A DNA stretch of 64,000 bases. Origin: Callorhinchus milii. Taxonomy: Eukaryota. The translations under genes were made by a program, and so were the position numbers. Positions 18,092 through 60,153 of this stretch are shown in pieces. The DNA lies in NCBI RefSeq assembly GCF_018977255.1, contig NW_024704892.1:1-64000 (forward strand). Reading direction: 5' to 3'. Position 1 is the first letter of the stretch. The number at the start of each line of letters is the position of its first letter. The notes below the pieces were generated by a model. It did not search any database. It had not been told where the DNA came from and was given only the letters and a program-made list of their open reading frames with translations.

Positions 18092-18216
18092 CTAATGAAG
18101 TCAAACATAGATAAAGTTCAGCTCACAATGCGACACCACCAACAACAAAAAATTACATGTGTACAGAGTCTCTTACGTCCCAATTCAATCTCTGATCTCT
18201 TTATCAATCACAATTA

Positions 18217-28790: not shown

Positions 28791-28995
28791 CTTGTGGTTG
28801 GTTTGTCGGTTCAATTCTGGGATATTTGGTAAAGATCATTTCATACCTTCTGTTGCCAGCAGCTTCTGCCTAATGAAGTCAAACATAGATAAAGTTCAGC
28901 TCACAATGCGACACCACCAACAACAAAAAATTACATGTGTACAGAGTCTCTTACGTCCCAATTCAATCTCTGATCTCTTTATCAATCACAATTAG

Positions 28996-29748
28996 ATTCG
29001 ACCCTGAGCTGTCCTTTCTCCCTCACATCCGCACCACAACTGGCACCGCCTTCCATCACCTCCGGAACATCGCCAGACTACGGCATTACCTCACCCCTCA
29101 CGCTGCTGAAACCCTGGTTCACGCCTTTGTCACCTCAACGCTGGACTACGGGAACTCTCTCCTCGCCGGCCTTCCCGCCACCTCCCTGCACAAGCTGCAG
29201 GTCATTCAGAACTCTGCAGCTCGGTGTACTGTCCCGCACCAGCTTCGGGACCACCATCACTCCCCACCCTCGCTCACCCTCCACTGGCTCCCCTATCCCC
29301 CAGAGAATTGATTTCAAGATTTTCATCCTCACGTACAAGGCCATTCACGGCCTTGCTCCCTCCTACCTCTCCAACCTACTTCCCCCACCTACCTGCCCGT
29401 CACCCTCCGTTCCTCTGGCTCCGACTGCTCCACGTCCCCCGCCCCAACCTCCCTACCATCGGTGGTCGGGCCTTCAGCCTCTCAGCCCCGAGGCTCTGGA
29501 ACTCCATCCCCCAGTGCCTTCGCCGCTTCCTCCCTTTCCTCCTCCAAGGCCGTTCTCAAAACCTTTCTCTTTGACCGTGCCTTCAGCTCCCCTCTCGACT
29601 CTCTTCCCCCCTCCTCGCTCCTCCCTTCCCTCCCCTCAACCTGACCATTTCCCCCTGCTCGGGTCATGACCCAACTGTGCAGCGCCTTGGGACGTCCTCC
29701 TGACGTGAAAGGCGCTTTATAAATGGAATCTTGTTGTTGTTGTTGTTG
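28996..29748 (+). mobile_element. L2 LINE 3' end (duplicate of 18217-18969)
   Basis: Same flanks and tail; several small indels at 29220-29430. Confidence 0.92.
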
Positions 29749-30065: not shown

Positions 30066-33000
30066 TTATTCAGGCAGAAGGTAATCGGCATCCATGGACA
30101 AGTTGTTAACGAAATAATCTGAAAATATTAGAAATGGAAATGTAATCGCGCTTTTCAGCTGCTCTCTGAATTTAGTCTGAGTAACTGCATATATACACGT
30201 GTTTGTACAGGAATTCAACAGCTGCAGCGTGGCGCCAGTTTCATAGAAAATGTACAAAGGATCATTGGAGTCCATGTGGGGTTCTTTTTTTAAAAATCCT
30301 CCAGTATAAGATAACGGATACTTGTGTCATCTACAATAATATAAAACTGGCTAAAACAGCAAATAGTAAAACGATGGATTTCCTTCTGCTCTTTATCTCC
30401 GGATCTCTGTCACTCGCTCCTCTATTCCAGTCCCCAGTGTTGTATCCCCACAATCTACTGCGCGCTCGACTGGCCACCAGTATGTGGCTGATCGTCAGGG
30501 TGTTGAGCAGAAAAATCAGAACGAATGGTATAATTGGGATTAAAATTATGTCGAGCAGGTCAAAAGCTACCCATGCGGAAGAAGTGAAAAATTCTATTTT
30601 AATTGCGCAGCCCCGTGTTGTATTTTTAACTATTTGCACTGATGTGAACACAAAATACCAGGGAATTTTTTGCCCAATTATAAACATACTGAATACGGCG
30701 ATAACAACACAAGCAGTTTTTTCGGTGCAATATTTGGTTTTCAATTGTTGGCAACAAATAGCCACATATCGATCAAAAGTAAAGGACACAGTAAACCAAA
30801 CTGAAGTTGCCGTTATTGTTGCAAACAGGAAGGAAAGGAGTCCACAGACAGCAGTAATGGACAGAAAACTATTGGGAAAGTAAGGCGAAATAATGCGAGT
30901 CAATACCACTTCGGTGAAAATCAGCATCAGATCAGACACTGACATGGCCACCAGATAGCGGGTGATGCACTTGGAGAGACCGCACTTCCCTCCAGACAGG
31001 ATCACAATTGACACCAGGTTAGCTGTAGGAAGAGGAAAAAAGAAATGGACAGTTATAATCATTGTTTGCTACAGTTTGTCTAGTGCCGACAAAGCGAAGG
31101 ATGCGGTCTCGATTTAGGCTAAACAGTCGCCTCCTCCAACTCAGTTCTTGTTCCCGAAGATTTTTGCCTCATGGTCCATCATCAAAACTGTATGGATTAC
31201 CGGCTCAGTTAGGTGCCATTGCCTTTAATATAGGTAGCTGCTTGTCGTTAGGTTACCAAAGAGGTAAGATATATTATAGAGTCGAAAAATGCTGATGTTA
31301 TACTGACTGACATGAAAGGTTGTTGGTCTGACTGATATGGGTGAACATCAGTCTTATTTACGTAGCTTAATGGATAGATGGATGAATGCAATGGATGGAT
31401 GAATGAATCGAAGTAAGACTAACTGACTGTCGGACTTGAATGCCTTTTAGACTGAAAGACTGGACTATTCTTTATTTCATGCACCCTTTCTCCATTCATA
31501 AATCGCGCCATGACAATAGCTAGCTGACTGCACACTGACCTACATTTCGCATCGAAGAATTTACAGAAAATTCCAGTCAAATTATCTATTAGTTCGCACC
31601 CTGCCCTGAATACATATGTACGTGCTTTACCACCTACATCAAACCGAATATCATTGATTAACTGGTCATCCAGCGTTTGATTAGCCTATCATCCCTCTCT
31701 CTTCTTCTGGTGCAAAACCTCTCTTTCTGCAGGTTTTCCTACCTTTCCAAACAAGCAAAACATTAACTTTTTTTAAAAGCTCTGCATTTTGTTTCTCCAA
31801 AATCAAAAAATATTGGCTCAGCTCAATTGCGCCTTCTATCTGTGATCAGGGTTTTCACTGCACCTTTATGCTCAAGATCGATTCTGCTGCTCGAGCTCTC
31901 TGTTACTCTTTAACCTACTGACTTCTTTCTTATCCATGGATGCCTCCCTACAATACATCCATGTAGGATCCAACACTCTGGGTCCAATTCTACTGGAACT
32001 AGTGCATGTGGTTTTTCTTCTCTAAACGTTCCTCCTCACATCCTTGCACAGTGGCAGCACATGGCAGGCTACAGAATTACACATGCAGATGTCCATATTC
32101 ATGAAGAATACACCCAAATCTGACTTCATTTTCAAACTCATCAATTGATGAGTCAAATTTTGTCTTTCATCTCCATTTTAATAAACTCTTCATTCGTCTC
32201 ATTCTGTCACTAACCAGAATCACTTTTTTTCAGCTCATCCATACATTACCGAACATTATAAACGCTCTTATTCGCCCTTATACGCTTATATTACACCTTG
32301 CTTCTGAACCCACTCCACGATGGAAATACAGTTGTTACCTTTCATCCATTTTCAACCATCCATAAGATACAGCTAATGCAGAAATCCTCTGCTCACATCC
32401 ACCTCTATAACAAACGCTTTGTGCAATTTATTGAGGTTCCACCGGGTCCCTCTCCAAACTGATTCCAACAGTGTTCCTTAGTGATTCCACATCTTCAAAA
32501 TCATCATCGAAAAAATATTCTCATCACCCAAATTTTGGTTTCGTACAGTCAAATTAGTATCAGAGATAAAGGTGATTTGCCGTGACAGGAAAGCTGTCCT
32601 TCGGATAAGACATTGAATCGAGCTCTCATCTGCCTACTCAGTTGGACGTTATGGATCCCGTGGCGGTAAGCTTCATTCATTCATTCATTCATTCATTCAT
32701 TCATTCATTCATATGCCCGTATTTTTACATTCGCAAAGTATTTAATATGAACAGCCATTCACATTGCACGCAGAATACTATACGGTTGAACCCTATTGGT
32801 TTAACTATTCAAATTAGTGTTCCAATGAGTGTGCTAATGAATTTGTTGCATCGGCAACATGTAATGATCGCAGTAATTTGATTAAATAGTAAGAATTCTA
32901 TTCGACCGCTTACATTTAAAATATCTGAGTACAGCAGAATATTTTCCGACAAAGACTGTATTTGTAGGCAAACCAGTCAGCTAATCAGTACATAGCCAGC

Positions 33001-40599: not shown

Positions 40600-41342
40600 A
40601 AGCTCTGGAACTCCATCCCCCAGTGACTTCGCCTTGCTTCCTCCCTTTCCTCCTTCAAGGCCGGTCTCAAAAGCTTTCAGCTTGTCCGTGCCTTCAGCTC
40701 CCTTCTCGACTGTCTAAGCCCTCCTCGCTCCCTCCCTTCCCTTCCCTTCCCTCACCCTGACCATTTCCCCCTCCTTGCTCCCTCCCTTCCCTTCCCTCCC
40801 CTCACCCTGACCATTTCCCCCCTTCTCGCTCTCTCCCTTCCCTCCCCTCACTCTGACCATCTCCCCCCTCCTCGTTCCCTCCTTTCCCTTCCCTCCCCCT
40901 GACCATTTCCCCCCTTCTCGCTCCCTCCCTTCCCTCCACTCATCCTGACCATTTCCTCCCTCCTCGCTCCCTCTCTCCCCTCTCCTCACCCTGACCATTT
41001 CCCCCCTCCTCGCTCTGTCCCTTCCTCCCCTCACCCTGACCGTTCCCCCTCCTCTCTCCCACTCTGCCCTCCCCTCACTCTGACCATCTCCCCCTTCCTC
41101 GCTCCCTCTCTCCTCTCCCCTCACCCTGACCATTTCCCCCTTCCTCGCTCTCTCCCTTCCTCTCCTCACCCTGACCATTCTCCCCTCCTCGCCCCCTCTC
41201 TCCCTTCCCCTCACCCTGACCATCTTCCCCTCCTCGCTCTCTCCCTTCCCTCCCCTCACCCTGACCATTTCCCCCCTCCTCGCTCTCTCCCGTCTTCCCC
41301 TCACCCTGACCATTGCCCCATCCTCGCTCCCTCTCTCCCCTC
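40600..41342 (+). repeat. L2 3' end with ~40-bp pyrimidine-rich minisatellite expansion
   Basis: L2 sequence gctctggaactccatcccccag runs into about 15 copies of ctcgctccctcccttccctcccctcaccctgaccatttccccc. Confidence 0.9.
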
Positions 41343-41364
41343 CCAATTGAGCCCAATAGCGGGG

Positions 41365-42740: not shown

Positions 42741-44593
42741 TCAGGTATTCTTGCCAGACGAGCGTTCCTTGAGCTTCACTCTCCCGAAAGTCAAGTTGGG
42801 TAATGCTTTTTTCAGCCTCTCGTGTAACTGAATAAAACAATCAATTAACCTGTAGATTAGAGCGGCTCAGAGCACAGACTGTAGTGACTTATCGAAAGCT
42901 GGTGGGTTTGTGAAGGACAAAACTATTTAATATGATCGTCATAAAATTCACTGCGATGGATATCGCGTCTTTCATTCTGTTTGTACATCTCAAAGGGCTT
43001 CACAGGCTATAATGTAAAGTGTGTATGTTTTGTAGGCTGAACGGGGCAGCCAATTTGCACGCAGCAAGTTCCCACAAGGAGTGAGCGAGCAATTTTATTT
43101 GGAGGGTAGCTGGCGAGATCACAGGGAGAAACTCCCTTCTCTTTCCAACTGTCCCATGGGGTCTTTGCCGTCCACCTGAAACAGGAAACAGTGACAAGAG
43201 GAAGGCTACAGGAAGCTGTAGCTCAGTGTGTGGTCAGGGCTGGAGCTCATGTTTTCACGCTGTGAAGCAACATTTCATGTCCAATGACTTACCTGCCCCA
43301 AAATCGACGCCTTCAGTTGCTCAAGTTCTTCCGGAGTCGGAGGATTTCCTCGTACGTGATGCCGAGAGTTAGAGGCACAAAATGGCATTCTAAACAAAAA
43401 AAAGTTTCTTTATCTCACATTGAGGCACCGATTCTTCAATAGCTGACCCACAGCTAGAGTCGTAGACGTAACATTGGACATCGCCATAGAGCCACAGCAA
43501 CAATAACCCCGTTTACACAGCGCCTCTCACACAGGGCAGCGACCCAGAGCGCTTGACAGTGATGGATTATGACGCTGAGGTGGGGGGAGGTGACCGTCGG
43601 GTCGGTCAAAGAGGAAGGTCTTCAGGCACGACCTGAAGGTGGGGCAGGAAGGGACTAGAGGGAGAAGTAGAGGAGGCGTGTCCCAAAGTTTGAGGGCACA
43701 GAGGCTGAAAGCGCGGCCATCGATAGTTTCAAGTGACAAAGAGGAGGACGGAGCCAGTCGAGCGGAGACAGTGGGTAAGGACCGGGGAGCTGGGGTGGGT
43801 GGTGGCCGGGTTGGGGAAGACGGGGACGGGTGACGGTTAAGCAGGTCGGAGAGGTATGGAGGTGCGAGGACATGAAGGGATATGAAAACGAGTGAGAGGG
43901 TTCCCTGCGCCATCCTCCCCACACACACAATGGCTCATTCCCTTGAACCCTGTGGCTCCCGTTGCACTGTCTCCCTGATCAGAGATAGGCATGCGAGCGC
44001 CATTGGTGGGATATCATCTTAACTCAACACCGCAAATGTAAGACAATCATTTGGGAAATAACGGGGTTTGTGGGGAAATGTAGCGAATCTGATCAAAAGA
44101 CCTGCCACAATTCAATCAACTCTCTGAAGAGACTTCCTGGGCTGAACGGTCTACTCCTGTCCCCAGTTTGATTACTCTTGAGAGTTAGGTCCCAGTGAGT
44201 CAAAGTGTAGGTTACCGGGCACGGTGAGGTGAGGTAGGGATCAGGTGAGACAGGTGAAGGGAGTTGTGGAGTTTGGGAGGGGGTTGGTGATGGATGTTGG
44301 GGGTTTGGATGGGGTGTTGATGTGGGATTGGGGGCTTGCTGGGTTGTTGGGGTGGGGTTAGGAATTTGGGTTTCGGGGTTGGGGATTGATTGGAGGCAGT
44401 TGGGGATTGGGGTGCTGCGGGTTGGGGTTTCGTGGGGAGAGTCCAGATGACACAGCAAAGACAATGTAAAGAGGTGTCAACTGGTTGAGAATCGCTGAGA
44501 TACAAAGTGGACTGACCAGGATTGTCATCACAGAATCCCTGATCCTCGATGTTCGATGGCCTCATGGGAGGAGAGACGGTGTTGGTTGTCTAT
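42741..44593 (-). CDS. Putative 3' exons of the lectin-mucin gene (44517-44593, 43293-43389, 42741-42827)
   Basis: Strong splice sites (ctctctccacag| and |gtcagt; tttgtttag| and |gtaagt; ttttattcag|). Reconstructed DRQPTPS/PPMRPSNIEDQGFCDDNP-ECHFVPLTLGITY/GNPPTPEELEQLKASILGQ-LHERLKKALPNLTFGRVKLKERSSGKNT* needs a frameshift in each of the first two exons. Confidence 0.55.
43500..43905 (-). mobile_element. Older L2 3' fragment
   Basis: LAPPYLSDLL...IDGRAFSLCALKLWD...FRSCLKTFLFDR. Confidence 0.8.
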
Positions 44594-44744
44594 CTGTGGA
44601 GAGAGGAGAAGCGTTACCAAGAGCGTCTCTGCTCTAACTCCTAGTTATTACTTCAAGCCTTGAGTCCAGGACACGCACCAGGACACATCATCCTTCGTGT
44701 TGCCCCCAATCAGATCGGGCTCTCTTCATATAATTATAATGATA

Positions 44745-45085
44745 TTATTATTATTAAGCCATGCATCTGATACAGCGCCTTAGAACATCTCAATACGTTT
44801 CACAGAATTTACTGTAAAGTTTAGTGACTGTGGAGTTCATGCGTAAAGTGCGGCAGCCCATTTTGCAGCACCAAGTCACACAAACAGCCGTGGATTGAGT
44901 AATCAAATTATTATTATGATTATTTAAAATTTTTTGGCAGTGTATTATTATCCCTGGAAAAGCAAACCACCAAACAATCAACAACCGGGTTCCTATTTAC
45001 TGCTACGGCGTGTGGAGTAAGGAATCGATCCCAGGTCCTCTCGCTTGCAATGCCAGTGCTCTAACCAAAGAGCTTCATGTCCCCA
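44745..45085 (-). mobile_element. Diverged SINE
   Basis: (tta)n tail, cggcagcccattttgcagca body, ctcgcttgcaatgccagtgctctaacca head. Confidence 0.75.
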
Positions 45086-45290
45086 TACTAACCTGCACAA
45101 CCCCACACAAACCTCCACAACCCCACGCTGACATACAAGTCCCCACACTTACCTTCACAACTCCACACTAACTTACACATTCCCACACTAATGTTCACAA
45201 GCCCACACTGAACTACACAACCCGACACTACCCTGCACAACCCCACATTGTCCTTCACAATCACACATTAACCTGGAGGACCCCAAAATG
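45085..45290. repeat. ~20-bp degenerate minisatellite
   Basis: cacaaccccacactaacctt-like unit, about 10 copies. Confidence 0.8.
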
Positions 45291-45603
45291 ACGTCTATTA
45301 AATTCTGTAAACCAGACCAGACACCTGCTTCACTGCCATTGAACTGTGATGACCTTAGTTCAGTTGTAGAACTGATTGAGCAAAACCCCAGAGTCCAATA
45401 GGAGGCTCCAAGTTGTAAAGTTTTACCGTCAGGAACACGGCCCTAACTGGTAACCCAGGGACACTGACCTGGCTAATGAGCAACATCATCTGGAGTGTCT
45501 GACAAGTTGTGTGGTTTGTATCAACTCCACACCAGGAGCTACTGTCTGACTCACTAAACGGTTGGCGATAAGCAGCAGGACAGACTGGTGAGCACTTAAT
45601 CAC

Positions 45604-48600
45604 TTGTCTCAATGTGGGTCCCGGTAACGGTGCTCTCGGGAGTCGCTGTAGGATCTGCTATGTAGGGATAAGGGGAGCTGGGATTTGGAGGAGGAGAGTC
45701 CGAGATCTGGGGAAGGGCAGGTGGAACTGAAAGATCAGAATTGGGAATGAACGAAAAGGTTTGAATTCACGGATGAACATTGTCAGGAGCCACCCTCAGA
45801 AACAGAGGCCCTAACGGGCAGCCCATGGACCCTGATCTAGCTCTGAGCGAGAGGTGGGCTCGGTTGCTGGGCCCTGTGATGGGGTGAAGAAGTCTCTGGC
45901 GGCTGTGGATGGGGTGGTTTCAGGAGCTGCAGTGGACGGAGCTGTTGGTGTGGTTCCCTGTGTAACTTAACATGTGGGAGTTACTGACCATTACATTATC
46001 TCAGATAAAATTGCACCATCTGAAAGAGTAACCTTGCAGCCACAGCCCAAACTATCGGGTAGGTTGTTCCTAGCTAGACAAGCAATGAGAAAGTTTACCA
46101 AACTGAGCTCTCTGCGGAATGCAGTTTTCACCGTTTAGATTCCAGCAGTTTCCCAAACACAAAGTCTGGTCTCCTCAAGCCTTAGCTCTTGCTAATCTGC
46201 ACCTCCCTTTGGAAATAGGCAAACAGATTTGTCCCTCAAGGGAGAGAGAGAGAGAGAGAGAGAGAGAGGCAGAGAGAGAGATGGAGTAAGAGAGAGGGAG
46301 AGGGATAGTGAGAGAGGAAGAGATAGAGAGAAAGAGAGATTGAGAGATAGTAAGCGCATTCCTATCCAACAATCTATCTCTCGGATTTCCATGTGCAGTT
46401 GGGCTGCATGGAAATGTCAGTTGGATTTGTATACTATAAAATACGATTATGGGTTTCCGCGTGTGTCAGATACCTGGCTGCCCGAAAGAAATATATTTCA
46501 GGACGCCACTGCCTAAACGGTGAGCACTTGGCAACTGAAGACAAAATCGTTACAAATTGATTAAGTATTATTATTAATATTATAATTAATATTATTATCC
46601 TGACTGCTGCGGTAATATTAAAGGCTGATCGGAATTTTCCCACCATTTTCATGTGAGACAACTGCCCGGGCACTTACTGGGAGGATCATCTGAAGCAGAG
46701 CGTTTCGGTGTTGTCCCATGAGATGTATCTGCTGAGTGGAGGCTTGTGGTGTCTGTGTGAGACGCGGGAGTCTCGCTTGGAGTCGCCGATGGCTGTGGAT
46801 CTGTGGAGACACAAGAACGGTTACCATGTGCTGCTCCAAATATTTGTGGAGGCCTATAGCTCAGTGGTTAGAGAACACACCAGACGACATGTGTTCGATT
46901 CAAGGGCGGTTTATGGCCAAACGTTGGGCAAGTTTCCTCACTGAACACACACAGACACACACATCTGTTCACCTTGCAGTAAAGACTGGTGCGCCTTTAC
47001 TTACCTCTCACAATTGGTGTCCCGGTAAAGACTCTGTCGTTAGTTGGTTTAGGTATATCTATGCTGGGAGGAGGAGAGCTGGAAGTTGGAGGAGGAGAGT
47101 CCTTGCTCTGGGGAAGGGCAGCTGGATCTGAAAGACCTGAATTGGGAATCAATTATAGGATTTGAAGTAACAGAAGAACTTTGTTCGGAGCCACCATCAA
47201 AATCACAGGCCCTAACTGGCAGCCCAATGAAACTGACCTGGCTTTGAGCGGGAGGTGGGCTGGGTTGCTGATCTCTGTGATGGGGTGAAGGTGTCTCTGG
47301 CGGCTGTGGATGGGGTGGTTTCTGGAGCGGCAGTGGTCGTAGCTCTTGCTGTAATTTCCTCTGTAACTAAAAATGTGGGAGTTAATGTCCCTCGTAATCT
47401 GTTGGCTAAAAATGCACCCGCTGCAAGATTAACCCTGCAGCCCAAACTCTGTCTAACGGCGAGGGTGGTCCTCGCTGGATAAGCAGTGGGAATGTTTACC
47501 AGACAGCGCTTTCAGCGGCATACTATGCAGTTTTCGCTGCTTTGGCTCCAGCAGTTTCCCCAACAGTAATTTTGGTGTCCTCAAACCTTGGCACTTGCCA
47601 ACTTGCGCCTCTCTCTTGAATTATGTAAGCAGGATGTGTCCCTCGAGGGAGAGAGTGCGAGAGAGTGCTTTCCATTCTCATAATCTATCCCTATGATTTC
47701 CATGTGAAGTTGGGCTCCATGGAAATCTCAGTTGGATTTGGATACACTTAAGCACGGTGTTGGTTTTCGATTTGTGTCAGAAACCCGGTTGATCACGATG
47801 ATGGTTTTCCCTGTGTGTCAGACACACGGCTGGTCAGCGTGATGAGTTTCCACGTGTGTCAGACACCCGGCCTTCCAAAATAAACATATGTGTATATAAA
47901 TATATATATGTGTATATATATATACATATAAGTTTGTACTGCTTAAACGTTGAGCACTTGGCAATTCATGACTAAATCGTTGCTAATTTTAATAATTATT
48001 ATTATTATCATGACACCTTGGGAATTCCTAAGGGCTGCTAGAAATTTTCCCACCATTTTCAAGTGAGACAAATTCCGGCACTTACGAGGAGGATCATCAA
48101 ACTTGGAGGCTTCCTGTGTTGACCAATGGGATATATATGCTGAGTGGAGGCTTGTGGTGTCTGTGTGAGACGCGGGAGTCTGGCTTGGAGTCTCCGATGG
48201 CTGTGGATCTGTGGAGACACAATAACGGTTACCATGTGTGGCTCCAAATATTTGTGGAGGCCTATAGCTCAGTGGTTAGAGAACACGCCAGAGGACATGT
48301 CTTCGTTTCAAGGGCGGGTTATGGCCGAACGTTGGGCAAGTTTCCTCACTGAACACACACAGGCACACACATCTTTGTTCACCTTGCAGTAAAGACTGGT
48401 GCGCCTTTACTTACCTGTCACACTTGGTGTCCAGGTAAAGACTCTGTCGTGAGTTGGTTTAGGTACATCTATGCTGGGAGGAGGAGAGCTAGAAGTTGGA
48501 GGAGGAGAGTCCGTGCTCTGCGGAAGGGCAGCTGGATCTGAAAGACCTGAATTAGGAATCAATTATAGGATTTGAAGTAACAGAAGAACTTTGTTCGGAG

Positions 48601-51600
48601 CCACCATCAAAATCACAGCCCCTAACTGGCAGCCCAATGAAACTGACCTGGCTTTGAGCGGGAGGTGGGCTGGGTTGCTGAGCTCTGTGATGGGGTGAAG
48701 GTGTCTCTGGCGGCTGTGAATGGGGTGGGATCAGGAGCGGCAGTGGGCGTAGCTCTTGCTGTATTTTCCTCTGTAACTAAAAATGTGGGAGTTAATATCC
48801 CTCGTAATCTGTTGGCTAAAAATGCACCCGCTGCAAGATTAACCCTGCAGCCCAAACTCTGTCTAACGGCGAGGGTGGTCCTCGCTGGATAAGCAGTGGG
48901 AATGTTTACCAGACAGCGCTTTCAGCGGCATACTATGCAGGTTTCGCTGCTTAGGCTCCAGCAGTTTCCCCAACAGAAATTTTGGGGTCCTCAAACCTTG
49001 GCACTTGCCAACTTGCGCGTCTCTCTTGAATTATGTAAGCAGGATGTGTCCCTCGAGGGAGAGAGTGCGAGAGAGCGCTTTCCATTCTCATGATCTATCC
49101 CTATGAATTCCATGTTTTGTTGGGCTCCATGGAAATCTCAGTTGGATTTAGATACACTTAAGCACGGTGTTGGGTTTCGATTTGTGTCAGAAACCCGGTT
49201 GATCACGATGATGGTTTCAAGGGCGGGTTATGGCCGAACGTTTGGCAAGTTTCCTCACTGAACACACACAGGCACACACATCTTTGTTCACCTTGCAGTA
49301 AAGACTGGTGCGACTTTACTTACCTGTCACTCTTGGTGTCCCGGTAAAGACTCTGTCGTGAGTTGGTTTAGGTAAATCTATGCTGGGAGGAGGAGAGCTA
49401 GAAGTTGGAGGAGGAGAGTCCGTGCTCTGCGGAAGGGCAGCTGGATCTGAAAGACCTGAATTGGGAATCAATTATAGGATTTGAAGTAACAGAAGAACTT
49501 TGTTCGGAGCCACCATCAAAATCACAGCCCCTAACTGGCAGCCCAATGAAACTGACGTGGCTTTGAGCGGGAGGTGGGCTGGGTTGCTGATCTCTGTGAT
49601 GGGGTGAAGGTGTCTCTGGCGGCTGTGGATGGGGTGGTTTCTGGAGCGGCAGTGGTCGTAGCTCTTGCTGTAATTTCCTCTGTAACTAAAAATGTGGGAG
49701 TTAATGTCCCTCGTAATCTGTTGGCTAAAAATGCACCCGCTGCAAGATTAACCCTGCAGCCCAAACTCTGTCTAACGGCGAGGGTGGTCCTCGCTGGATA
49801 AGCAGTGGGAATGTTTACCAGACAGCGCTTTCAGCGGCATACTATGCAGTTTTCGCTGCTTTGGCTCCAGCAGTTTCCCCAACAGTAATTTTGGTGTCCT
49901 CAAACCTTGGCACTTGCCAACTTGCGCCTCTCTCTTGAATTATGTAAGCAGGATGTGTCCCTCGAGGGAGAGAGTGCGAGAGAGTGCTTTCCATTCTCAT
50001 AATCTATCCCTATGATTTCCATGTGAAGTTGGGCTCCATGGAAATCTCAGTTGGATTTGGATACACTTAAGCACGGTGTTGGTTTTCGATTTGTGTCAGA
50101 AACCCGGTTGATCACGATGATGGTTTTCCCTGTGTGTCAGACACACGGCTGGTCAGCGTGATGAGTTTCCACGTGTGTCAGACACCCGGCCTTCCAAAAT
50201 AAACATATGTGTATATAAATATATATATGTGTATATATATATACATATAAGTTTGTACTGCTTAAACGTTGAGCACTTGGCAATTCATGACTAAATCGTT
50301 GCTAATTTTAATAATTATTATTATTATCATGACACCTTGGGAATTCCTAAGGGCTGCTAGAAATTTTCCCACCATTTTCAAGTGAGACAAATTCCCGGCA
50401 CTTACGAGGAGGATCATCAAACTTGGAGGCTTCCTGTGTTGACCAATGGGATATATATGCTGAGTGGAGGCTTGTGGTGTCTGTGTGAGACGCGGGAGTC
50501 TGGCTTGGAGTCTCCGATGGCTGTGGATCTGTGGAGACACAATAACGGTTACCATGTGTGGCTCCAAATATTTGTGGAGGCCTATAGCTCAGTGGTTAGA
50601 GAACACGCCAGAGGACATGTCTTCGTTTCAAGGGCGGGTTATGGCCGAACGTTGGGCAAGTTTCCTCACTGAACACACACAGGCACACACATCTTTGTTC
50701 ACCTTGCAGTAAAGACTGGTGCGCCTTTACTTACCTGTCACACTTGGTGTCCAGGTAAAGACTCTGTCGTGAGTTGGTTTAGGTACATCTATGCTGGGAG
50801 GAGGAGAGCTAGAAGTTGGAGGAGGAGAGTCCGTGCTCTGCGGAAGGGCAGCTGGATCTGAAAGACCTGAATTAGGAATCAATTATAGGATTTGAAGTAA
50901 CAGAAGAACTTTGTTCGGAGCCACCATCAAAATCACAGCCCCTAACTGGCAGCCCAATGAAACTGACCTGGCTTTGAGCGGGAGGTGGGCTGGGTTGCTG
51001 AGCTCTGTGATGGGGTGAAGGTGTCTCTGGCGGCTGTGGAATGGGGTGGGATCAGGAGCGGCAGTGGGCGTAGCTCTTGCTGTATTTTCCTCTGTAACTA
51101 AAAATGTGGGAGTTAATATCCCTCGTAATCTGTTGGCTAAAAATGCACCCGCTGCAAGATTAACCCTGCAGCCCAAACTCTGTCTAACGGCGAGGGTGGT
51201 CCTCGCTGGATAAGCAGTGGGAATGTTTACCAGACAGCGCTTTCAGCGGCATACTATGCAGGTTTCGCTGCTTAGGCTCCAGCAGTTTCCCCAACAGAAA
51301 TTTTGGGGTCCTCAAACCTTGGCACTTGCCAACTTGCGCGTCTCTCTTGAATTATGTAAGCAGGATGTGTCCCTCGAGGGAGAGAGTGCGAGAGAGCGCT
51401 TTCCATTCTCATGATCTATCCCTATGAATTCCATGTTTTGTTGGGCTCCATGGAAATCTCAGTTGGATTTAGATACACTTAAGCACGGTGTTGGGTTTCG
51501 ATTTGTGTCATAAACCCGGTTGATCACGATGATGGTTTCAAGGGCGGGTTATGGCCGAACGTTTGGCAAGTTTCCTCACTGAACACACACAGGCACACAC

Positions 51601-54600
51601 ATCTTTGTTCACCTTGCAGTAAAGACTGGTGCGACTTTACTTACCTGTCACACTTGGTGTCCCGGTAAAGACTCTGTCGTGAGTTGGTTTAGGTAAATCT
51701 ATGCTGGGAGGAGGAGAGCTAGAAGTTGGAGGAGGAAAGTCCGTGCTCTGCGGAAGGGCAGCTGGATCTGAAAGACCTGAATTGGGAATCAATTATAGGA
51801 TTTGAAGTAACAGAAGAACTTTGTTCGGAGCCACCATCAAAATCACAGCCCCTAACTGGCAGCCCAATGAAACTGACCTGGCTTTGAGCGGGAGGTGGGC
51901 TGGGTTGCTGATCTCTGTGATGGGGTGAAGGTGTCTCTGGCGGCTGTGGATGGGGTGGGTTCAGGAGCGGCAGTGGGCGTAGCTCTTGCTGTATTTTCCT
52001 CTGTAACTAAAAATGTGCGGGTTAATATCCCTCGTAATCTGTTGGCTAAAAATGCACCCGCTGCAAGATTAACCCTGCAGCCCAAACTCTGTCTAACGGC
52101 GAGGGTGGTCCTCGCTGGATAAGCAGTGGGAATGTTTACCAGACAGCGCTTTCAGCGGCATACTATGCAGGTTTCGCTGCTTAGGCTCCAGCAGTTTCCA
52201 CACCAGAAATTTTGGGGTCCTCAAACCTTGGCACTTGCCAACTTGCGCGTCTCTCTTGAATTATGTAAGCAGGATGTGTCCCTCGAGGGAGAGAGTGCGA
52301 GAGAGCGCTTTCCATTCTCATAATCTATCCCTATGAATTCCATGTTTTGTTGGGCTCCATGGAAATCTCAGTTGGATTTAGATACACTTAAGCACGGTGT
52401 TGGGTTTCGATTTGTGTCAGAAACCCGGTTGATCACGATGATGGTTTCAAGGGCGGGTTATGGCCGAACGTTTGGCAAGTTTCCTCACTGAACACACACA
52501 GGCACACACATCTTTGTTCACCTTGCAGTAAAGACTGTTGCGACTTTACTTACCTGTCACTCTTGGTGTCCCGGTAAAGACTCTGTCGTGAGTTGGTTTA
52601 GGTACATCTATGCTGGGAGGAGGAGAGCTAGAAGTTGGAGGAGGAGAGTCCGTGCTCTGCGGAAGGGCAGCTGGATCTGAAAGACCTGAATTGGGAATCA
52701 ATTATAGGATTTGAAGTAACAGAAGAACTTTGTTCGGAGCCACCATCAAAATCACAGCCCCTAACTGGCAGCCCAATGAAACTGACGTGGCTTTGAGCGG
52801 GAGGTGGGCTGGGTTGCTGATCTCTGTGATGGGGTGAAGGTGTCTCTGGCAGCTGTGGATGGGTTGGGTTCAGGAGCGGCAGTGGGCGTAGCTCTTGCTG
52901 TATTTTCCTCTGTAACTAAAAATGTGGGAGTTAATGTCCCTCGTAATCTGTTGGCTAAAAATGCACCCGCTGCAAGATTAACCCTGCAGCCCAAACACTG
53001 TCTAACGGCGAGGGTGGTCCTCGCTGGATAAGCAGTGTGAATGTTTACAAGACAGAGCTTACAGCGGCATACTATGCAGTTTTCGCTGCTTAGGCTCCAG
53101 CAGTTTCGCTACAGAGATTTTGGGGTCCTCAAATCTTGGCACTTGCCAACTTGCGTCTCTCTCTTGAATTATGTAAGCAGGATGTGTCCCTCGAGGGAGA
53201 GATTGCGAGAGAGCGCTTTCCATTCTAATAATCTATCCCTATGATTTCCATGTGTAGTTGGGCTGCATGAAAATCTCAGTTGGATTTCGATACACTTAAG
53301 CACGGTGGTGGGTTTCGATTTGTGTCAGAAACCCGGTTGATTACGATGATGGCTTTCCGTGTGTCAGACACCCGGCTGGTCAGGGTGATGAGTTTCCACG
53401 TGTGTCAGACACCCGGCTGTCCAAAATAAACATATATGTCTGTAAATATATAATTATATATACATATGTATATATATACATATGATTGTAATGCTTAAAC
53501 GTTGAGCACTTGGAAATTCATAACAAAATCGTTGTTATTTTATTAATTATTATTATTATCATGACAGCTGGGGAATTCCTAAGGGCTGCTGGAAATTTTC
53601 CCAGCATTTTCATGTGAGACAAATGCCCGGCACTTACGAGGAGTTTCATCAAACTTGGAGTCTTCCTGTGTTGACCAATGGGATATATCTGCTGAGTGGA
53701 GGCTTGTACTGTCTGTGTGAGACGCGGGAGTCTCGCTTGGAGTCGCCGATGGCTGTGGATCTGTGGAGACAGAAGAACGGTTACCATGTGCGGCTCCAAA
53801 TATTTGTGGTGGCCTATAGCTCAGTGGTTAGAGAACACGCCAGAGGACATGTGTTTGATTCAGGGGCGGGTTATGGCCAAACGTTGGGCAAGTTTCCTCA
53901 CTGAACACACACAGACACACACATCTCTGTTCACCTTGCAATAAAGACTGGTGCGCCTTTACTTACCTGTCACTCTTGGTGTCCCGGTAAAGACTCTGTC
54001 GTGAGTTGGTTTAGGTATATCTATGCTGGGAGGAGGAGAGCTGGTACTTGGAGGAGGAGAGTCCGTGCTCTGGGGAAGGGCAGCTGGATCTGAAAGACCT
54101 GAATTGGGAATCAATTCTAGGATTTGAAGTAACAGAAGAACTTTGTTCGGAGCCACCATCAAAATCACAGGCACTAACTGGCAGCCCAATGAAACTGACC
54201 TGGCTTTGAGCGGGAGGTGGGCTGGGTTGCTGATCTCTGTGATGGGGTGAAGGTGTCTCTGGCGGCTGTGGATGGGGTGGTTTCTGGAGCGGCAGTGGTC
54301 GTAGCTCTTGCTGTAATTTCCTCTGTAACTAAAAATGTGGGAGTTAATGTCCCTCGTAATCTGTTGGCTAAAAATGCACCCGCTGCAAGATTAACCCTGC
54401 AGCCCAAACTCTGTCTAACGGCGAGGGTGGTCCTCGCTGGATAAGCAGTGGGAATGTTTAGCAGACAGCGCTTTCAGCGGCATACTGTGCAGGTTTCGCT
54501 GCTTAGGCTCCAGCAGTTTCCCTACAGAGATTTTGGGGTCCTCAAATCTTGGCACTTGCCAACTTGCGTCTCTCTCTTGAATTATGTAAGCAGGATGTGT

Positions 54601-57146
54601 CCCTCGAGGGAGAGATTGCGAGAGAGCGCTTTCCATTCTAATAATCTATCCCTATGATTTCCATGTGTAGTTGGGCTGCATGAAAATCTCAGTTGGATTT
54701 CGATACACTTAAGCACGGTGGTGGGTTTCGATTTGTGTCAGAAACCCGGTTGATTACGATGATGGCTTTCCGTGTGTCAGACACCCGGCTGGTCAGGGTG
54801 ATGAGTTTCCACGTGTGTCAGACACCCGGCTGTCCAAAATAAACATATATTTCTGTAAATATATAATTATATATACATATGTATATATATACATATGATT
54901 GTAATGCTTAAACGTTGAGCACTTGGAAATTCATAACAAAATCGTTGTTATTTTATTAATTATTATTATTATCATGACAGCTGGGGAATTCCTAAGGGCT
55001 GCTGGAAATTTTCCCAGCATTTTCATGTGAGACAAATGCCCGGCACTTACGAGGAGTTTCATCAAACTTGGAGTCTTCCTGTGTTGACCAATGGGATATA
55101 TCTGCTGAGTGGAGGCTTGTACTGTCTGTGTGAGACGCGGGAGTCTCGCTTGGAGTCGCCGATGGCTGTGGATCTGTGGAGACAGAAGAACGGTTACCAT
55201 GTGCGGCTCCAAATATTTGTGGAGGCCTATAGCTCAGTGGTTAGAGAACACGCCAGAGGACATGTGTTCGATTCAGGGGCGGGTTATGGCCAAACGTTGG
55301 GCAAGTTTCCTCACTGAACACACACAGACACACACATCTCTGTTCACCTTGCAATAAAGACTGGTGCGCCTTTACTTACCTGTCACTCTTGGTGTCCCGG
55401 TAAAGACTCTGTCGTGAGTTGGTTTAGGTATATCTATGCTGGGAGGAGGAGAGCTGGTATTTGGAGGAGGTGAGTCCGTGCTCTGGGGAAGGGCAGCTGG
55501 ATCTGAAAGACCTGAATTGGGAATCAATTATAGGATTTGAAGTAACAGAAGAACTTTGTTCGGAGCCACCATCAAAATCACAGCCCCTAACTGGCAGCCC
55601 AATGAAACTGACCTGGCTTTGAGCGGGAGGTGGGCTGGGTTGCTGATCTCTGTGATGGGGTGAAGGTGTCTCTGGCGGCTGTGGATGGGGTGGTTTCAGG
55701 AGCGGCAGTGGTCGTAGCTCTTGCTGTAATTTCCTCTGTAACTAAAAATGTGGGAGTTAATGTCCCTCGTAATCTGTTGGCTAAAAATGCACCCGCTGCA
55801 AGATTAACCCTGCAGCCCAAACTCTGTCTAACGGCGAGGGTGGTCCTCGCTGGATAAGCAGTGGGAATGTTTACCAGACAGCGCTTTCAGCGGCATACTG
55901 TGCAGGTTTCGCTGCTTAGGCTCCAGCAGTTTCCCTACAGAGATTTTGGGGTCCTCAAATCTTGGCACTTGCCAACTTGCGTCTCTCTCTTGAATTATGT
56001 AAGCAGGATGTGTCCCTCGAGGGAGAGATTGCGAGAGAGCGCTTTCCATTCTAATAATCTATCCCTATGATTTCCATGTGTAGTTGGGCTGCATGGAAAT
56101 CTCAGTTGGATTTCGATACACTTAAGCACGATGGTGGGTTTCGATTTGTGTCAGAAACCCGGTTGATCACGATGATGGCTTTCCGTGTCTCAGACACACG
56201 GCTGGTCAGCGTGATGAGTTTCCACGTGTGTCAGACACCCGGCTGTCCAAAATAAACATATATGTCTGTAAATATATATATATACATATGTATATACATA
56301 CATATGATTGTAATGCTTAAACGTTGAGCACTTGGAAATTCATGACAAAATCGTTGCTAATTTTAATAATTATTATTATTATCATGACAGCTGGGGAATT
56401 CCTAAGGGCTGCTGGAAATTTTCCCAGCATTTTCAAGTGAGACAAATTCCCGGCACTTACGAGGAGTTTCATCAAACTTGGAGGCTTCCTGTGTTGACCA
56501 ATGGGATATATCTGCTGAGTGGAGGCTTGTGGTGTCTGTGTGAGACGCGGGAGTCTCGCTTGGAGTCGCCGATGGCTGTGGATCTGTGGAGACAGAAGAA
56601 CGGTTACCATGTGCGGCTCCAAATATTTGTGGTGGCCTATAGCTCAGTGGTTAGAGAACACGCCAGAGGACATTTGTTCGATTCAGGGGCGGGATATGGC
56701 CAAACGTTGGGCAAGTTTCCTGACTGAACACACACAGACACACACACCTCTGTTCACCTTGCAGTAGAAATTGCTGCGCACTTACTTACCCGTCACACTT
56801 GGGTTCCTAGTAAAGACTCTCTGATGAGTTGCTTTAGGTGCAGCGATGCTGGGAGGAGGATAGCTGGAAAGTGGAGATGGAGTGTCCGTGCTCTGGGGGA
56901 GTGCAGGTGGAACTGAGAGACCAGAATTGGGAATAAAGGAGAGTTTTAAGTCACGGATGAACTATGTTCGGAGCCACCGTCAGAAACACAGCCCCTAAAG
57001 GGTAGCCCATGAACACTGACCTGGCTCTGAGCGGGAGGCGGGCTCGTTTGGTGGGCTCTGTGATGGGGTGAAAGTGCCTCTGGCCGCTTTGGATGGGGTG
57101 ATTTCAGGAGCTGCAGTGGACGGAAATGTTGTTGGTGTTTTTCTCT
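45604..57146 (-). CDS. Tandem array of symmetric mucin-like (P/T/S-rich) exons in 1.41 kb and 0.91 kb repeat units
   Basis: Type A (EEITARATTTAAPETTPSTAARDTFTPSQRSATQPTSRSKP): 57021-57146, 55613-55735, 54200-54322, 52787-52909, 51878-52000, 50968-51091, 49557-49679, 48648-48770, 47238-47360. Type B (DPAALPQSTDSPPPSTSSPPPSIDIPKPTHDRVFTGTPRVT): 56790-56912, 55380-55502, 53967-54089, 52554-52676, 51645-51767, 50735-50857, 49324-49446, 48415-48537, 47005-47127, 45604-45726. Type D (DPQPSATPSETPASHTDTTSLHSADISHWSTQEASKFDETP): 56461-56583, 55051-55173, 53638-53760, 50406-50528, 48086-48208, 46678-46800. All have cag| acceptors and GT donors, phase 1-1. Confidence 0.82.
46241..46345. repeat. (GA)n microsatellite
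   Basis: Direct reading. Confidence 0.95.
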
Positions 57147-57453
57147 CTGGAAATAAGCATGTGGAAGTTACTGGCCCTATACTGGGGCATTTCTAATGTA
57201 TTTCCGCACATTTACACACTGTAGTTACCAGCAATAATAACATACCAGGGTAACCTCTAGATTATCCTGTTGTACGTTATTCCCATCTGATGGACTACGA
57301 ATTTGGTTATAGTGCAGGTTAGAGGCAGAGCGAAGCTTCCTCTCTACACTGTCCTAGAACATCAATGACCCAACCCCACAACAACAGCCACCGCCACCGA
57401 TCCTACAGCTCAGATCACATCTCACTCCGTCATGTCAGCCACAAGCTCATTAC

Positions 57454-57834
57454 CTGCGTAACAGACGAAAGGGCCAGTTTGTTGACATCCAGTGTCATGC
57501 CATAAACCACCAGCACCATATCCACCGTTGATCACACGGACACATACTGAAATCTTTGTATACTCATTCGGCTCCACATATCCCCAGTGTGTATAATTGG
57601 CGTTGTCTCCATTTGACCATTTCCAGCCGGCCTCAGTCTGGTCATTATTGTACAGCCCGATCCAGACGTATTGACTTCCAAGAAACAGAGGATCAATGAG
57701 CCTCTTCTCCTCTGGACTCCGGATGCTGACGAGTTCCATGTAGTGATTGCGGCAGTGATCCCGGGCTTCAGTCCAGGTTCTGTCCTTGTTGATCCTGTGA
57801 TACTCTCTGTCCGGGGATTGGATGGTCTGTACAG
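57454..57834 (-). CDS. C-type lectin domain exon (381 nt, phase 1-1)
   Basis: [43 protein letters not shown]...VWIGL...WKWSNG...[11 protein letters not shown]...CV...LWHDTGC...PFVCYA; four conserved Cys, WIGL, EPN, WHD; ctcttcccag| acceptor and |gtaatg donor. Confidence 0.93.
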
Positions 57835-58164
57835 CTGGGAAGAGGAGAGAATATCAGTCATTTTATTGGTTGGAGCAAATGATAGGAAGGTGAGGATCAG
57901 TGGCAATTGGTCACCAGCTAACCATCCCATCCCCAACCCCTCTTCCTACAGTCCCCACCGCCACACTCTCCCCCCCATTCGCCCCACACGCACCACCTCA
58001 AACATTCCCTCCCCACCTAACCACAGACTTCCTCCCACCCCCGACAAACTTCCCTCAACCCCACATGTGCCCCCACCACAATGCAACCCCCACTCTCCCC
58101 CATCCCACACCCTGCCCCACACATTCCCCTCCATACTCCCCCGCCCCGTATTCCCTTCCACCTG

Positions 58165-59465
58165 TTTGTGTGTGAGTGACTGTGTGGATGAATGGCTGTG
58201 AGAGTGACTATGTGTGTGAGTGACTTTGTCTTTGAATGAGTGAGCGAGTGAGTGGTTGACTGTGCGAATGACTCTGTGAGTGACTGTGTGAGTGAGTCAG
58301 TGACTGTGTGTGTGAGTGATTGCCCCAGGGAGTGAGTGAGTGAGTGAGTCAGCGAGTGAGTGACTATGTGAGTGACAGTGTGAATGAGTGATTCAGTGAA
58401 AGTATGAGTGAGTGAGTGAGTGAGTGAGCGAGTGAGTGAGCAAGCGAGTGAGTGAGTGACTCTATGAGTGACTGTGTGAGTAAATGATTATTTGTTACTG
58501 TCTGTTATTGTGAGTGACGGTGGGTTTGTGAGTGAATATGAATAACTGTATGTGGGACTGTAAGTGACTGTTTGAGTGAGTGAGTGTATGAATGGCTGTT
58601 TGAGTGGCTGTGTGAGTGAATGTGTGAGTCAATTTCTGTGTCAGTGACTGTGCGGGTGAGGGTGAGTGAGTGACATTGCAGTGAGTAAATGTTAGTGAAT
58701 TTCTGTGTGACTGACTGTATTTGTGAGTGACTGTGTGAGTGATGGTGAGTGAGTGACTCTGTAGTGAGTGACTGTGAGTAAGTGTCTGTGTGAATGAGTG
58801 GCTGCGTGAGTAACCGTGTGAGTGAAGGTTAGTGAGTGCCTGTGTGAGAGAGTAACGCTGAGTGAGTGTCTGCAGTGACTGAGTGAGTGAGTGAGTGACT
58901 GTAAGTGAGTGACTGTGTGTTTGAATGACTTTGTGTGAGTTAATTCGTGAGCGAATGACTGTGTGTGTGACTGTGAATAACTTTGTGAGTGACTTTGTGT
59001 CTGACTGTGTGTGAACAACTGTGTGTTGAATACACTGCGCGAGGAGTGAATGTGTGAGTGAGGGTGAGTGATTGAATGTGTGAGTGATTGCGAGACGCTG
59101 AGTGAGTGACTGTAGTAAGTGAGTAAATTTGAGTGAATGTGAGTAAGTGACCATGTGAGTAATTGTGAACGTGTGATTGATTGTGAGTGAGTGAATGTAT
59201 GAGTGACTGAATAAGCGACTGCCTGTGTGTGATGATTTGACTGAGTGAGTCATTGTGTGAGTAAGTGTGTGAGTAAGTGTCTGAGTGACTGTGCGTTTGT
59301 GAGTGATTGCGTGTGTGTGTGAGAGACTGTGTGTGCGATTGATTGAGTGAGTGCATCAGTGTGTCAGTAAGTGCGTGAGTTAGTGTCTGAGTGACTGTGA
59401 GTTTGTGAGTGACTGTGTGTGTGTGAGTGACTGTTTGTGTGAGAGCGACTGCGTGTTTGTGAGTT
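58165..59465. repeat. Degenerate (GAGT/GACT/GT)n simple-sequence tract
   Basis: Direct reading; source of the spurious His/Thr/Ser-rich ORFs. Confidence 0.92.
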
Positions 59466-59497
59466 ACTGGGTGAGGGTCAGAAATGTCAGGACCAGA

Positions 59498-59790
59498 CCT
59501 GGGGACAGATGTTCTGTGCATGTGGGTGGGGCAGATATGATAAGTGTGTGGGGAATGCGGACAGATGTGCTGTCGTGGGTTGTGGACAGATGTGCTGTGT
59601 GTTAGGATGGGGAGAGATGTGCTGTTTGGGTGTTGGAGACAGATTTTCTCTGTGTGGGGGTGGGGACAGATGTGCTGTGTGGAGGGTTTGGGACCAATGT
59701 GCTGCGTGTGAGTGTGTGGACAGAAGCGCTGTGTGTGGAGGTGGGGACAGCTGTGCGGTGCTGTTGTTGTGGGGATAAATGTAGTGTGTG
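59498..59790. repeat. Degenerate ~25-30 bp repeat
   Basis: Recurring gggacagatgtgctgtgtg core. Confidence 0.8.
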
Positions 59791-59832
59791 CGGTTTAAAT
59801 ATGGAATGTCAGTGAGCAGGGAATTGAAGGAC

Positions 59833-59872
59833 CTGGAAATAGCAGCAACAGCAGAAGGAACAGGTCCTTCAT
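59833..59872 (-). CDS. Signal-peptide exon of the lectin-mucin gene (exon 59833-59906)
   Basis: acaATG context, MKDLFLLLLLLFP, ends in phase 1 and joins the CTLD exon in frame; acceptor gtgttacag|; donor |gtcctt is weak. Confidence 0.75.
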
Positions 59873-59954
59873 TGTGACTTGGGTGTTCGACACCAAAAAA
59901 CAGCATCTGTAACACAGGAGGCAATATTACTGAGCACAGAGACTGGGAGAGTGA

Positions 59955-60153
59955 CTCGACTCTCTTCCCCCTCCTCGCTCCCTCCCTTCCCTCACCCTGA
60001 CCATTTCTCCCCTCCTTGCTCCCTCCCTTCCCCCCCCTCACCCTGACCATTTCCCCCCTGCTCGGGTCATGACCCAACTGTGCAGCGACTTGGGACGTCC
60101 TCCTGACGTGAAAGGCGCTTTATAAATGGAATCTTGTTGTTGTTGTTGTTGTT
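59955..60153 (+). mobile_element. Short L2 3' terminus
   Basis: Same 3' UTR and (ttg)n tail as 18820-18969, with two copies of the 40-bp motif. Confidence 0.9.

Follow-up and report, generated by a model that had tools for sequence, protein, structure and literature searches.

Can a stretch of tandem, satellite-like DNA behind a lectin exon hold the coding exons of a long protein stalk? This question is raised by a locus in Callorhinchus milii, the elephant shark, on the minus strand of a 64,000-nucleotide (nt) stretch of DNA that was analysed as a whole and is called the window here (NCBI RefSeq assembly GCF_018977255.1, contig NW_024704892.1, positions 1 to 64,000). The original prediction, made from the sequence alone, had proposed a secreted C-type lectin gene between positions 42,741 and 59,872, in which a signal peptide and one C-type lectin-like domain (CTLD) are followed by a mucin-like stalk encoded by many short exons rich in proline, threonine and serine (P/T/S). 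The present analysis indicates that the locus is likely to be a Callorhinchus milii secreted C-type lectin-type gene with an amplified array of exon cassettes, a judgement that concerns the kind of locus and does not extend to its expression and function. The stalk exons, of three types called A, B and D, are by homology genuine exons of the lectin's transcription unit, and the main independent support comes from paralogue models in the same species. Overall, the locus is judged to be a lectin gene specific to its lineage, with an array of exon cassettes that is young; the gene is possibly decaying.

Lectin head and tandem stalk exons

The signal-peptide exon and the single CTLD exon with EPN and WHD motifs that had been proposed as the head of the gene were both located (Table 1). 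In the signal exon, 11 of the 13 residues are those of the N-terminus of the RefSeq paralogue P0155, whose signal peptide (MKDLFLLLLVLVP) and following residues match the signal exon and the start of the CTLD exon in the window. The CTLD exon is bordered by a cag acceptor (ttctctcctcttcccag) and a gtaatg donor at 57453, and is recognised by the Pfam family Lectin_C (PF00059) with an E-value of 1.8e-19 and 70.9 bits (cut-off 22.6) over profile positions 3-106 of 107. It also contains the four cysteines (DHC, SVCV, DTGC and FVCY) and the WIGL motif (WIGLYNN) that define a CTLD.

EPN had in addition been taken as a mark of mannose-type binding, and this part could not be upheld. In lectins of the MBP-A type, the mannose-type site 2 consists of EPN, an acidic residue before the cysteine of strand beta-3, and WND. 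Judged by this motif rather than by a residue-by-residue alignment with a sugar-binding structure, the canonical calcium and sugar site of the window's CTLD is incomplete: EPN is present, but with His in place of Asn in the WND motif (WHD) and no acidic residue before the cysteine, two of the five calcium ligands of site 2 depart from the canonical set. On sequence grounds, EPN by itself is insufficient for a mannose-type site in this domain. The paralogues differ at these positions, with DPN/WFD, DPN/WID, EPN/WID or DPN/WND. Among solved structures, the best matches of the CTLD are domains of the mannose receptor family (PLA2R, DEC-205, FcRY and MRC1/MRC2), at approximately 30 bits per domain, and many CTLDs of this family do not bind sugar.

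For the stalk, the minus strand was scanned for segments between an AG and a GT that are open in phase 1-1 and contain more than 40% P/T/S, and their flanks were tabulated. This resulted in 26 candidate exons of three unrelated types (10 A, 10 B and 6 D), arranged as A-B-D, A-B-D, A-B-D, A-B, A-B, A-B-D, A-B, A-B-D, A-B-D, A-B. The length is exactly 123 nt in 23 of them, and a polypyrimidine tract with AG and a donor of the type GTAAGT, GTCAGT or similar are present in all except A10. About 25 exons, all in phase 1-1 and mutually in frame, had been proposed; this stood for 24 of the 26, which are clean, and failed for A6, which carries one extra base, and for A10, which lacks proper splice sites. 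In the coding phase, no stop occurs over the 26 exons except in the irregular A10, against 18 and 35 stops in the other two frames. That this openness exceeds chance is not confirmed: because the stalk exons are copies of each other, the open frames amount to approximately three independent observations, not 26, and the independent support is the homology to the paralogues.

The exons lie in a tandem array at 45.5-57.1 kb, in which a repeat search found 10 copies with a start-to-start spacing of 1401-1413 or 909-910 nt. Tandem Repeats Finder reports periods up to 500 nt, and the larger period of this array is therefore not reported by it. The central copies are 94-100% alike, and the first and last are 64-84% alike. 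Introns measure 104-110 nt (A-B), 204-206 nt (B-D), 720-728 nt (D-A) and 553 nt (B-A), and the 553-nt B-A intron is equivalent to the 3' portion of the D-A intron, indicating that the 0.9-kb unit is the 1.4-kb unit minus about 500 nt including D. The block 47600-49189 and its copy 2.32 kb away (49919-51510) differ by no substitutions and by two one-base homopolymer indels over 1.6 kb. Since one pair of blocks is free of substitutions over this length, part of the amplification is extremely recent.

Each long intron preceding an A exon contains an AT-rich microsatellite together with a 39-41-nt minisatellite (TGTGTCAGACACCCGGCTGATCAC...). Downstream of B10, at 45440-45500 on the minus strand, ccag followed by gtcagtgtccctggg resembles, by eye, the 3' end of an A exon with its donor, and this stretch may be the remnant of an eleventh unit.

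The product proposed for the family consists of a signal peptide, one CTLD, a P/T/S-rich linker encoded by phase 1-1 exons of 41 codons, and a short tail that is conserved. In the window's copy, the A-B(-D) cassette, introns included, has been amplified to about ten tandem units, likely by unequal crossing-over in a 0.9-kb (A-B), 1.4-kb (A-B-D) or 2.3-kb (both together) register. As the cassettes are phase-symmetric, gain, loss or skipping of units keeps the frame, and the length of the stalk is free to change. If spliced like the paralogues, the gene would encode a protein of approximately 1,200 residues, with a lectin-type head on a long non-membrane stalk that would probably be O-glycosylated. 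The 24 clean exons (961 residues) contain 20% P, 34% S+T, 0.9% Gly and no Cys, and a P/T/S-rich, Cys-free composition is typical of mucin-like regions that are extended and O-glycosylated. In no exon does the 19-residue Kyte-Doolittle mean exceed 0.71, indicating that a transmembrane segment is absent, in agreement with the original prediction. If expressed, the product would be secreted, since it carries a signal peptide and lacks any hydrophobic segment. We infer that the window's gene would be transcribed and spliced, and that its product would be glycosylated and bind a ligand; a role in mucosa, skin or egg coat is pure conjecture.

Paralogues and distribution of the family

Six predicted Callorhinchus milii paralogues (five distinct RefSeq models) show CTLD-A, A-B, B-D, D-A and B-T1-T2-T3 junctions, T1 to T3 being the tail exons, in the frame and with the junction codons of the window. 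The predicted in-frame splicing of the CTLD to the A/B/D linker is supported by homology to these six models, all of which use the predicted junction codons. Their compositions are signal-CTLD-A-B (P0070), signal-CTLD-A-B-A-B (P0151), CTLD-A-B-T1-T2-T3 (P0078), A-B-T1-T2-T3 (P0154), signal-CTLD-CTLD-A-T1-T2-T3 (P0155) and CTLD-A-B-D-A-B (P0156, partial), so that the linker patterns are A, A-B, A-B-A-B or A-B-D-A-B. The CTLDs of the paralogues are 68-71% identical to that of the window. When the paralogues were aligned onto the window by tblastn, matches were obtained in the predicted frame for A (57-88% identity), B (50-63%), D (approximately 50-65%) and T3 (79-86%), and the junction-spanning residues (Y-A/T-E-R-K, EP-D-P, VT-D-PQP and the D-to-A junction) agree with the splice sites of the window. 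The signal peptide, the CTLD, the A/B/D segments, the junction codons and the sequence of the T1-T3 tail are common to the window's gene and its paralogues. Unlike the window's gene, the paralogues carry in-frame tails and 1-5 linker segments, which makes the window's copy, with 26 cassettes, the extreme one.

The contigs that carry the paralogues are unplaced and small (11-111 kb). The window's gene is flanked on either side by a 46-nt C-rich minisatellite (CCCCCTCCTCGCTCCC...CACCCTGACCATTT), of which 13.7 copies lie about 1.4 kb past the T3 stop (40719-41344) and 2.3 copies lie some 100 nt before the ATG (59967-60064). It may represent the ends of the duplication unit that spread the lectin gene family.

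In RefSeq, Callorhinchus milii paralogues are named layilin-like (XP_007882718.1), C-type lectin-like (XP_007910672.1), extensin-like (XP_042202341.1 and XP_042201927.1), macrophage mannose receptor 1-like (XP_042201874.1) and cell surface glycoprotein 1-like (XP_042202678.1, partial). These names stem from automatic annotation, and the defining features of the named families were not found. Proteins of the mannose receptor family, after which P0155 is named, have ricin-type and FNII domains, 8-10 CTLDs and a transmembrane anchor, whereas the window's gene has a single CTLD, no ricin or FNII domain, no hydrophobic segment and no membrane anchor. Layilin, the name given to P0078, has a transmembrane segment and a cytoplasmic tail, and was rejected on the same hydropathy maximum of 0.71. 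Collectins have a collagen Gly-X-Y stalk, which the low glycine content of the window's stalk excludes. Classical gel-forming and membrane mucins share the P/T/S-rich composition of the stalk; gel-forming mucins have VWD/C8/TIL and cystine-knot domains and one large P/T/S exon, whereas here no VWD, cystine-knot or SEA domain was found, Lectin_C is the sole Pfam family in the paralogues, and the P/T/S region is split into 41-codon exons lying 104-728 nt apart. A transmembrane anchor or a hydrophobic tail of the glycosylphosphatidylinositol type was also rejected, as the exons contain no hydrophobic segment. The family is already in RefSeq under misleading automatic names, and what is new is the extreme, very recent amplification in the window's copy, together with the finding that the models of this gene, P0043 and P0153, break off behind the lectin exon.

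With the CTLD exon as query, HMMER retrieved 9,186 proteins at E <= 0.001 from 1.84 billion representatives, and proteins with several CTLDs head the ranking. Among the single-domain matches listed, the closest all come from Callorhinchus milii: P0043 (100%), P0070 (69%) and P0078 (68%). P0043 is the window's own 105-residue open reading frame (ORF) and clusters with the Callorhinchus milii UniRef entry A0A4W3I6A7, which identifies the window as elephant-shark DNA. Outside the chimaera, the nearest database relatives come from sharks and rays; they are 'mannose receptor-like' proteins with several CTLDs and are 40-43% identical. Besides P0043, no protein with a CTLD of 100% identity was found among the best 150 of the 9,186. 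The search for homologous proteins covers lengths up to 1.75 times that of the query, and a long RefSeq model of the window's locus may exist beyond this reach. Searches with the stalk were word-based and limited in length, and can therefore not prove absence from other taxa: the stalk plus tail of P0078 gave 5 matches among 337 candidates and the B-D-A-B segment of P0156 gave 4 among 8,000 candidates scored, all in Callorhinchus milii. The tail of the paralogues matched no Pfam family above the cut-off (best DUF7736, E 0.16). AlphaFold2 on a 6-sequence alignment of the tail gave no confident fold (one helix; mean predicted local distance difference test score 50.7), and the best ESM Atlas score, 0.83, is within noise. 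In the literature searched on Callorhinchus milii C-type lectins, judged in part by title, no description of a CTLD-linker-tail family was found.

Table 1. Predicted exons of the lectin-type gene and repeat elements in its introns (positions in the window)
Feature	Position	Strand	Remarks
Signal-peptide exon	59872-59833	-	40 nt; ATG at 59872, MKDLFLLLLLLFP plus 1 base, GT donor
Intron 1	57835-59832	-	about 2 kb, mostly TGAG/TGAC-type microsatellite; crossed by genomic DNA contigs
CTLD exon	57834-57454	-	381 nt, phase 1-1; EPN, WHD, WIGL, 4 Cys
A1	57021-57146	-	126 nt; 80% identical to A segment of P0155
B1	56790-56912	-	123 nt
D1	56461-56583	-	123 nt; matches D segment of P0156
A2	55613-55735	-	
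B2	55380-55502	-	
D2	55051-55173	-	
A3	54200-54322	-	
B3	53967-54089	-	
D3	53638-53760	-	
A4	52787-52909	-	
B4	52554-52676	-	unit without D
A5	51878-52000	-	
B5	51645-51767	-	unit without D
A6	50968-51091	-	124 nt; extra base in short homopolymer, frame broken
B6	50735-50857	-	
D6	50406-50528	-	
A7	49557-49679	-	
B7	49324-49446	-	unit without D
A8	48648-48770	-	
B8	48415-48537	-	
D8	48086-48208	-	
A9	47238-47360	-	
B9	47005-47127	-	
D9	46678-46800	-	3' third diverged
A10	45831-45965	-	degenerate; 135 nt open only via weak AAG acceptor (45965) and new donor
B10	45604-45726	-	diverged (69-73% identity with the remaining B exons), without indel
T1 tail exon	44517-44593	-	77 nt, 78 in paralogues; phase 1 reads RQPTPSLLP then TGA
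T2 tail exon	43293-43389	-	97 nt, 98 in paralogues; frameshift after ...ITY
T3 tail exon	42741-42827	-	intact; LHERLKK...GKNT then stop; 86% identical to P0155
Intron minisatellite/microsatellite sites	47757-47871, 50076-50190, 53321-53419, 54734-54832, 56147-56245		

Integrity of the copy and competing explanations

Several observations weigh against an intact, expressed gene. The paralogue proteins are automatic predictions, for which transcript support is not visible, and the database models of the window's own gene (P0043 and P0153) end by read-through just past the CTLD exon. Words of the CTLD exon are contained in 4 of 12 listed runs, all from one study, and these four are genomic DNA, as their contigs (over 53950-59900) cross exon-intron borders, for example at 56967-57642; of the 27 joints in these contigs, none of the 15 listed lies at a predicted splice junction. 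In eight of eight probable Callorhinchus milii RNA runs, the share of CTLD exon words was 0.00, which speaks weakly against high expression in the sampled tissues. In addition, the stalk exons are no better conserved than the introns: A2 and A8 are 95.1% identical while the neighbouring intron is 99.1% identical, and for D9 and D8 these values are 84.6% and 95.1%. The pooled ratio of the proportions of nonsynonymous and synonymous differences (pN/pS) is 1.64 for A, 0.96 for B and 1.17 for D, as a neutral array would give. Lesions are also present: the frame of A6 is broken, A10 lacks the donor GT of the other A exons and has a closed frame if entered at the acceptor that corresponds to theirs (exon start 45957), and T1 and T2 are each one base short relative to three paralogues. 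T1 has stops in all three frames and is unreadable throughout, its conserved continuation MRPSNIEDQGFCDDNP lying in another frame. A stop with two introns downstream normally invites nonsense-mediated decay, and the T1 stop would be expected to have this effect on the window's transcript.

The lesions do not all carry the same weight. One of the two homopolymer indels between the 1.6-kb blocks is the A6 frameshift, and identical blocks that differ by homopolymer indels alone follow the pattern of consensus errors in a repeat; the A6 lesion is therefore probably an assembly error, the exon being intact in reality. The deletions in T1 and T2 also fall within short homopolymer runs. However, four other DNA samples show at most one consistent indel relative to the window over approximately 2.7 kb of unique sequence, which makes an assembly error a less likely cause in T1 and T2 than in A6. 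The tail exons are 82-86% identical in protein to P0155, above the approximately 70% of the CTLD, which argues that the lesions in T1 and T2, if real, are recent.

Of the three terminal exons that had been proposed, all match the paralogues and T3 is intact, while T1 and T2 are out of frame. Because each of these is one base short, the protein would end ten codons into T1, and the product as drawn down to 42741 is unreadable. Rescue of T1 through an internal AG acceptor was rejected, as this needs a different entry phase and would meet the stops present in every frame. Between T2 and T3, a candidate alternative last exon was observed at 43120-43176 on the minus strand, with a good acceptor, VDGKDPMGQLEREGSFSL followed by a stop, in phase 0, and with an AATAAA at 43099, about 20 nt past it; this exon is absent from every paralogue protein examined. 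It is conceivable, though somewhat less than an even prospect, that the copy is intact and its frameshifts are assembly errors; a copy that is tail-less but still working is a doubtful option.

The rival that survives best is a young pseudogene, in which the tail (T1 and T2) and part of the stalk (A6 and A10) have been lost and the array expands neutrally, like a satellite, inheriting its frames and splice sites. This is a serious possibility that still falls short of probable. It would account for three one-base lesions and one degenerate exon, for pN/pS near 1 with exons not conserved above introns, and for the absence of CTLD words from all eight probable RNA runs, and the neighbouring rhodopsin-type receptor ORFs of the window are likewise split or truncated. 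On the other side, the tail is still closer to P0155 than the CTLD is, so that any loss of constraint must be very recent, and the A6 lesion resembles an assembly error. Moreover, a pN/pS near 1 is common in the evolution of PTS linkers, functional ones included. The diverged B and D exons also hold their exact length and frame while the introns gain indels: all B (10 of 10) and D (6 of 6) exons are exactly 123 nt and gapless, even at 69-79% identity, whereas the 104-110-nt A-B intron shows 2-8 gap columns in all three diverged comparisons. Taken together with the pN/pS values and the identities of exons and introns, this pattern fits a linker selected only for composition and length, and neutral drift fits equally well.

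According to a second rival, only a short lectin of signal peptide and CTLD is produced, with transcripts that terminate within the intron following the CTLD exon and the array never spliced in. P0043 and P0153, which end by read-through at 57453 and beyond, agree with this, as does the lack of RNA evidence for the stalk. However, the paralogue model P0152 ends alike, yet the RefSeq models P0070 and P0151 of that same paralogue splice to A and B, so that read-through looks like a habit of prediction. The good gtaatg donor at 57453 and the good A1 acceptor also argue against a short product, which we consider improbable. For annotation, this calls for caution, as 11 kb of cassettes that are likely to be coding is missing from the current models, which end behind the lectin exon.

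It is still less probable, and in our view very unlikely, that a short A-B(-D) linker region, like that of paralogues with one or two units, was mis-assembled into an array with too many units, or into one that is partly spurious. The two 1.6-kb blocks that are identical apart from two homopolymer indels look like the result of consensus errors and possibly of a false duplication, and the location of the paralogues on small unplaced contigs indicates that the family is hard to assemble. Against this, contigs from the four DNA runs of other, independent samples show an array depth approximately 4-6 times that of the unique flanks (X1 98-109 against 17), as a real multi-copy array would give, a read depth that, by the tool's own warning, is not to be taken as copy number. 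Distinguishable subtypes of unit (A of the EIT or ENT type, units with or without D, diverged first and last units) also occur in a consistent order. That A, B and D stem purely from a satellite or a transposon was rejected, as the paralogue protein models contain these segments in the window's frame.

Comparable systems and other features of the window

Assembly of a repeated region exon by exon is also known from DMBT1 (salivary agglutinin, gp-340). DMBT1 is a secreted mucosal defence glycoprotein in which SRCR exons alternate with short Ser/Thr/Pro-rich SID exons, and germline variants with 8 or 13 SRCR domains change protein size and bacterial binding (PMC5435793). In this exon-by-exon construction of the repeated region, DMBT1 resembles the window's gene; it differs in that DMBT1 amplifies a unit including the binding domain, whereas in the window amplification is confined to the linker cassettes that follow one lectin head, and the two are not related in sequence. 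In the kringle IV-2 repeat of LPA and the PEVK exons of titin, phase-symmetric exons have been amplified together with their introns, and the number of units changes the length in frame. These share the whole-exon array design with the window, while their proteins and functions differ.

If the window's gene is expressed, it would be a case in which a glycoprotein stalk is built and resized by amplifying whole symmetric exons and not by repeats within one exon, and this in a lectin family that the searches made here encountered in the elephant shark alone. A further proposal, which is tentative and rather unlikely, is that the array is a live, copy-number-variable whole-exon repeat in which unequal crossing-over between the phase-symmetric cassettes tunes the length of an O-glycosylated stalk with one lectin head, between paralogues (1-26 cassettes) and perhaps between individuals. 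It would then be a chimaera-specific counterpart, in a secreted defence lectin, of length polymorphism of the DMBT1 or LPA type, and defective cassettes such as A6 and A10 would be skipped without loss of frame. Otherwise, this is an ordinary fast-evolving, lineage-specific lectin locus, possibly becoming a pseudogene.

Outside the lectin-type gene, three ORFs of rhodopsin-type receptors (Pfam 7tm_1) are present in the window, at 5389-6275 (+), 19525-20169 (-) and 30331-31062 (-). Near 5757-5817, the first is broken into a pair of overlapping frames. The second and third end before the last helices and lie approximately 10.8 kb apart, in what seems to be a duplicated block. All three are either pseudogenes or carry further one-base assembly errors. 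An ORF with a PRY/SPRY (B30.2) domain at 15420-15896 (-), with an E-value of 1.1e-26 for SPRY, probably represents the final exon of a gene of the TRIM or butyrophilin type. Four more ORFs, at 18159-18794 (+), 28937-29311 (+), 10267-10782 (-) and 43527-43928 (-), share the motifs ...LDYGNSLLAG... and ...IGGRAFS...; the first of them, the only one tested, had no Pfam match. Recurring on both strands, these ORFs look like copies of an interspersed repeat, and the one at 43527-43928 lies between T1 and T2 of the lectin-type gene.

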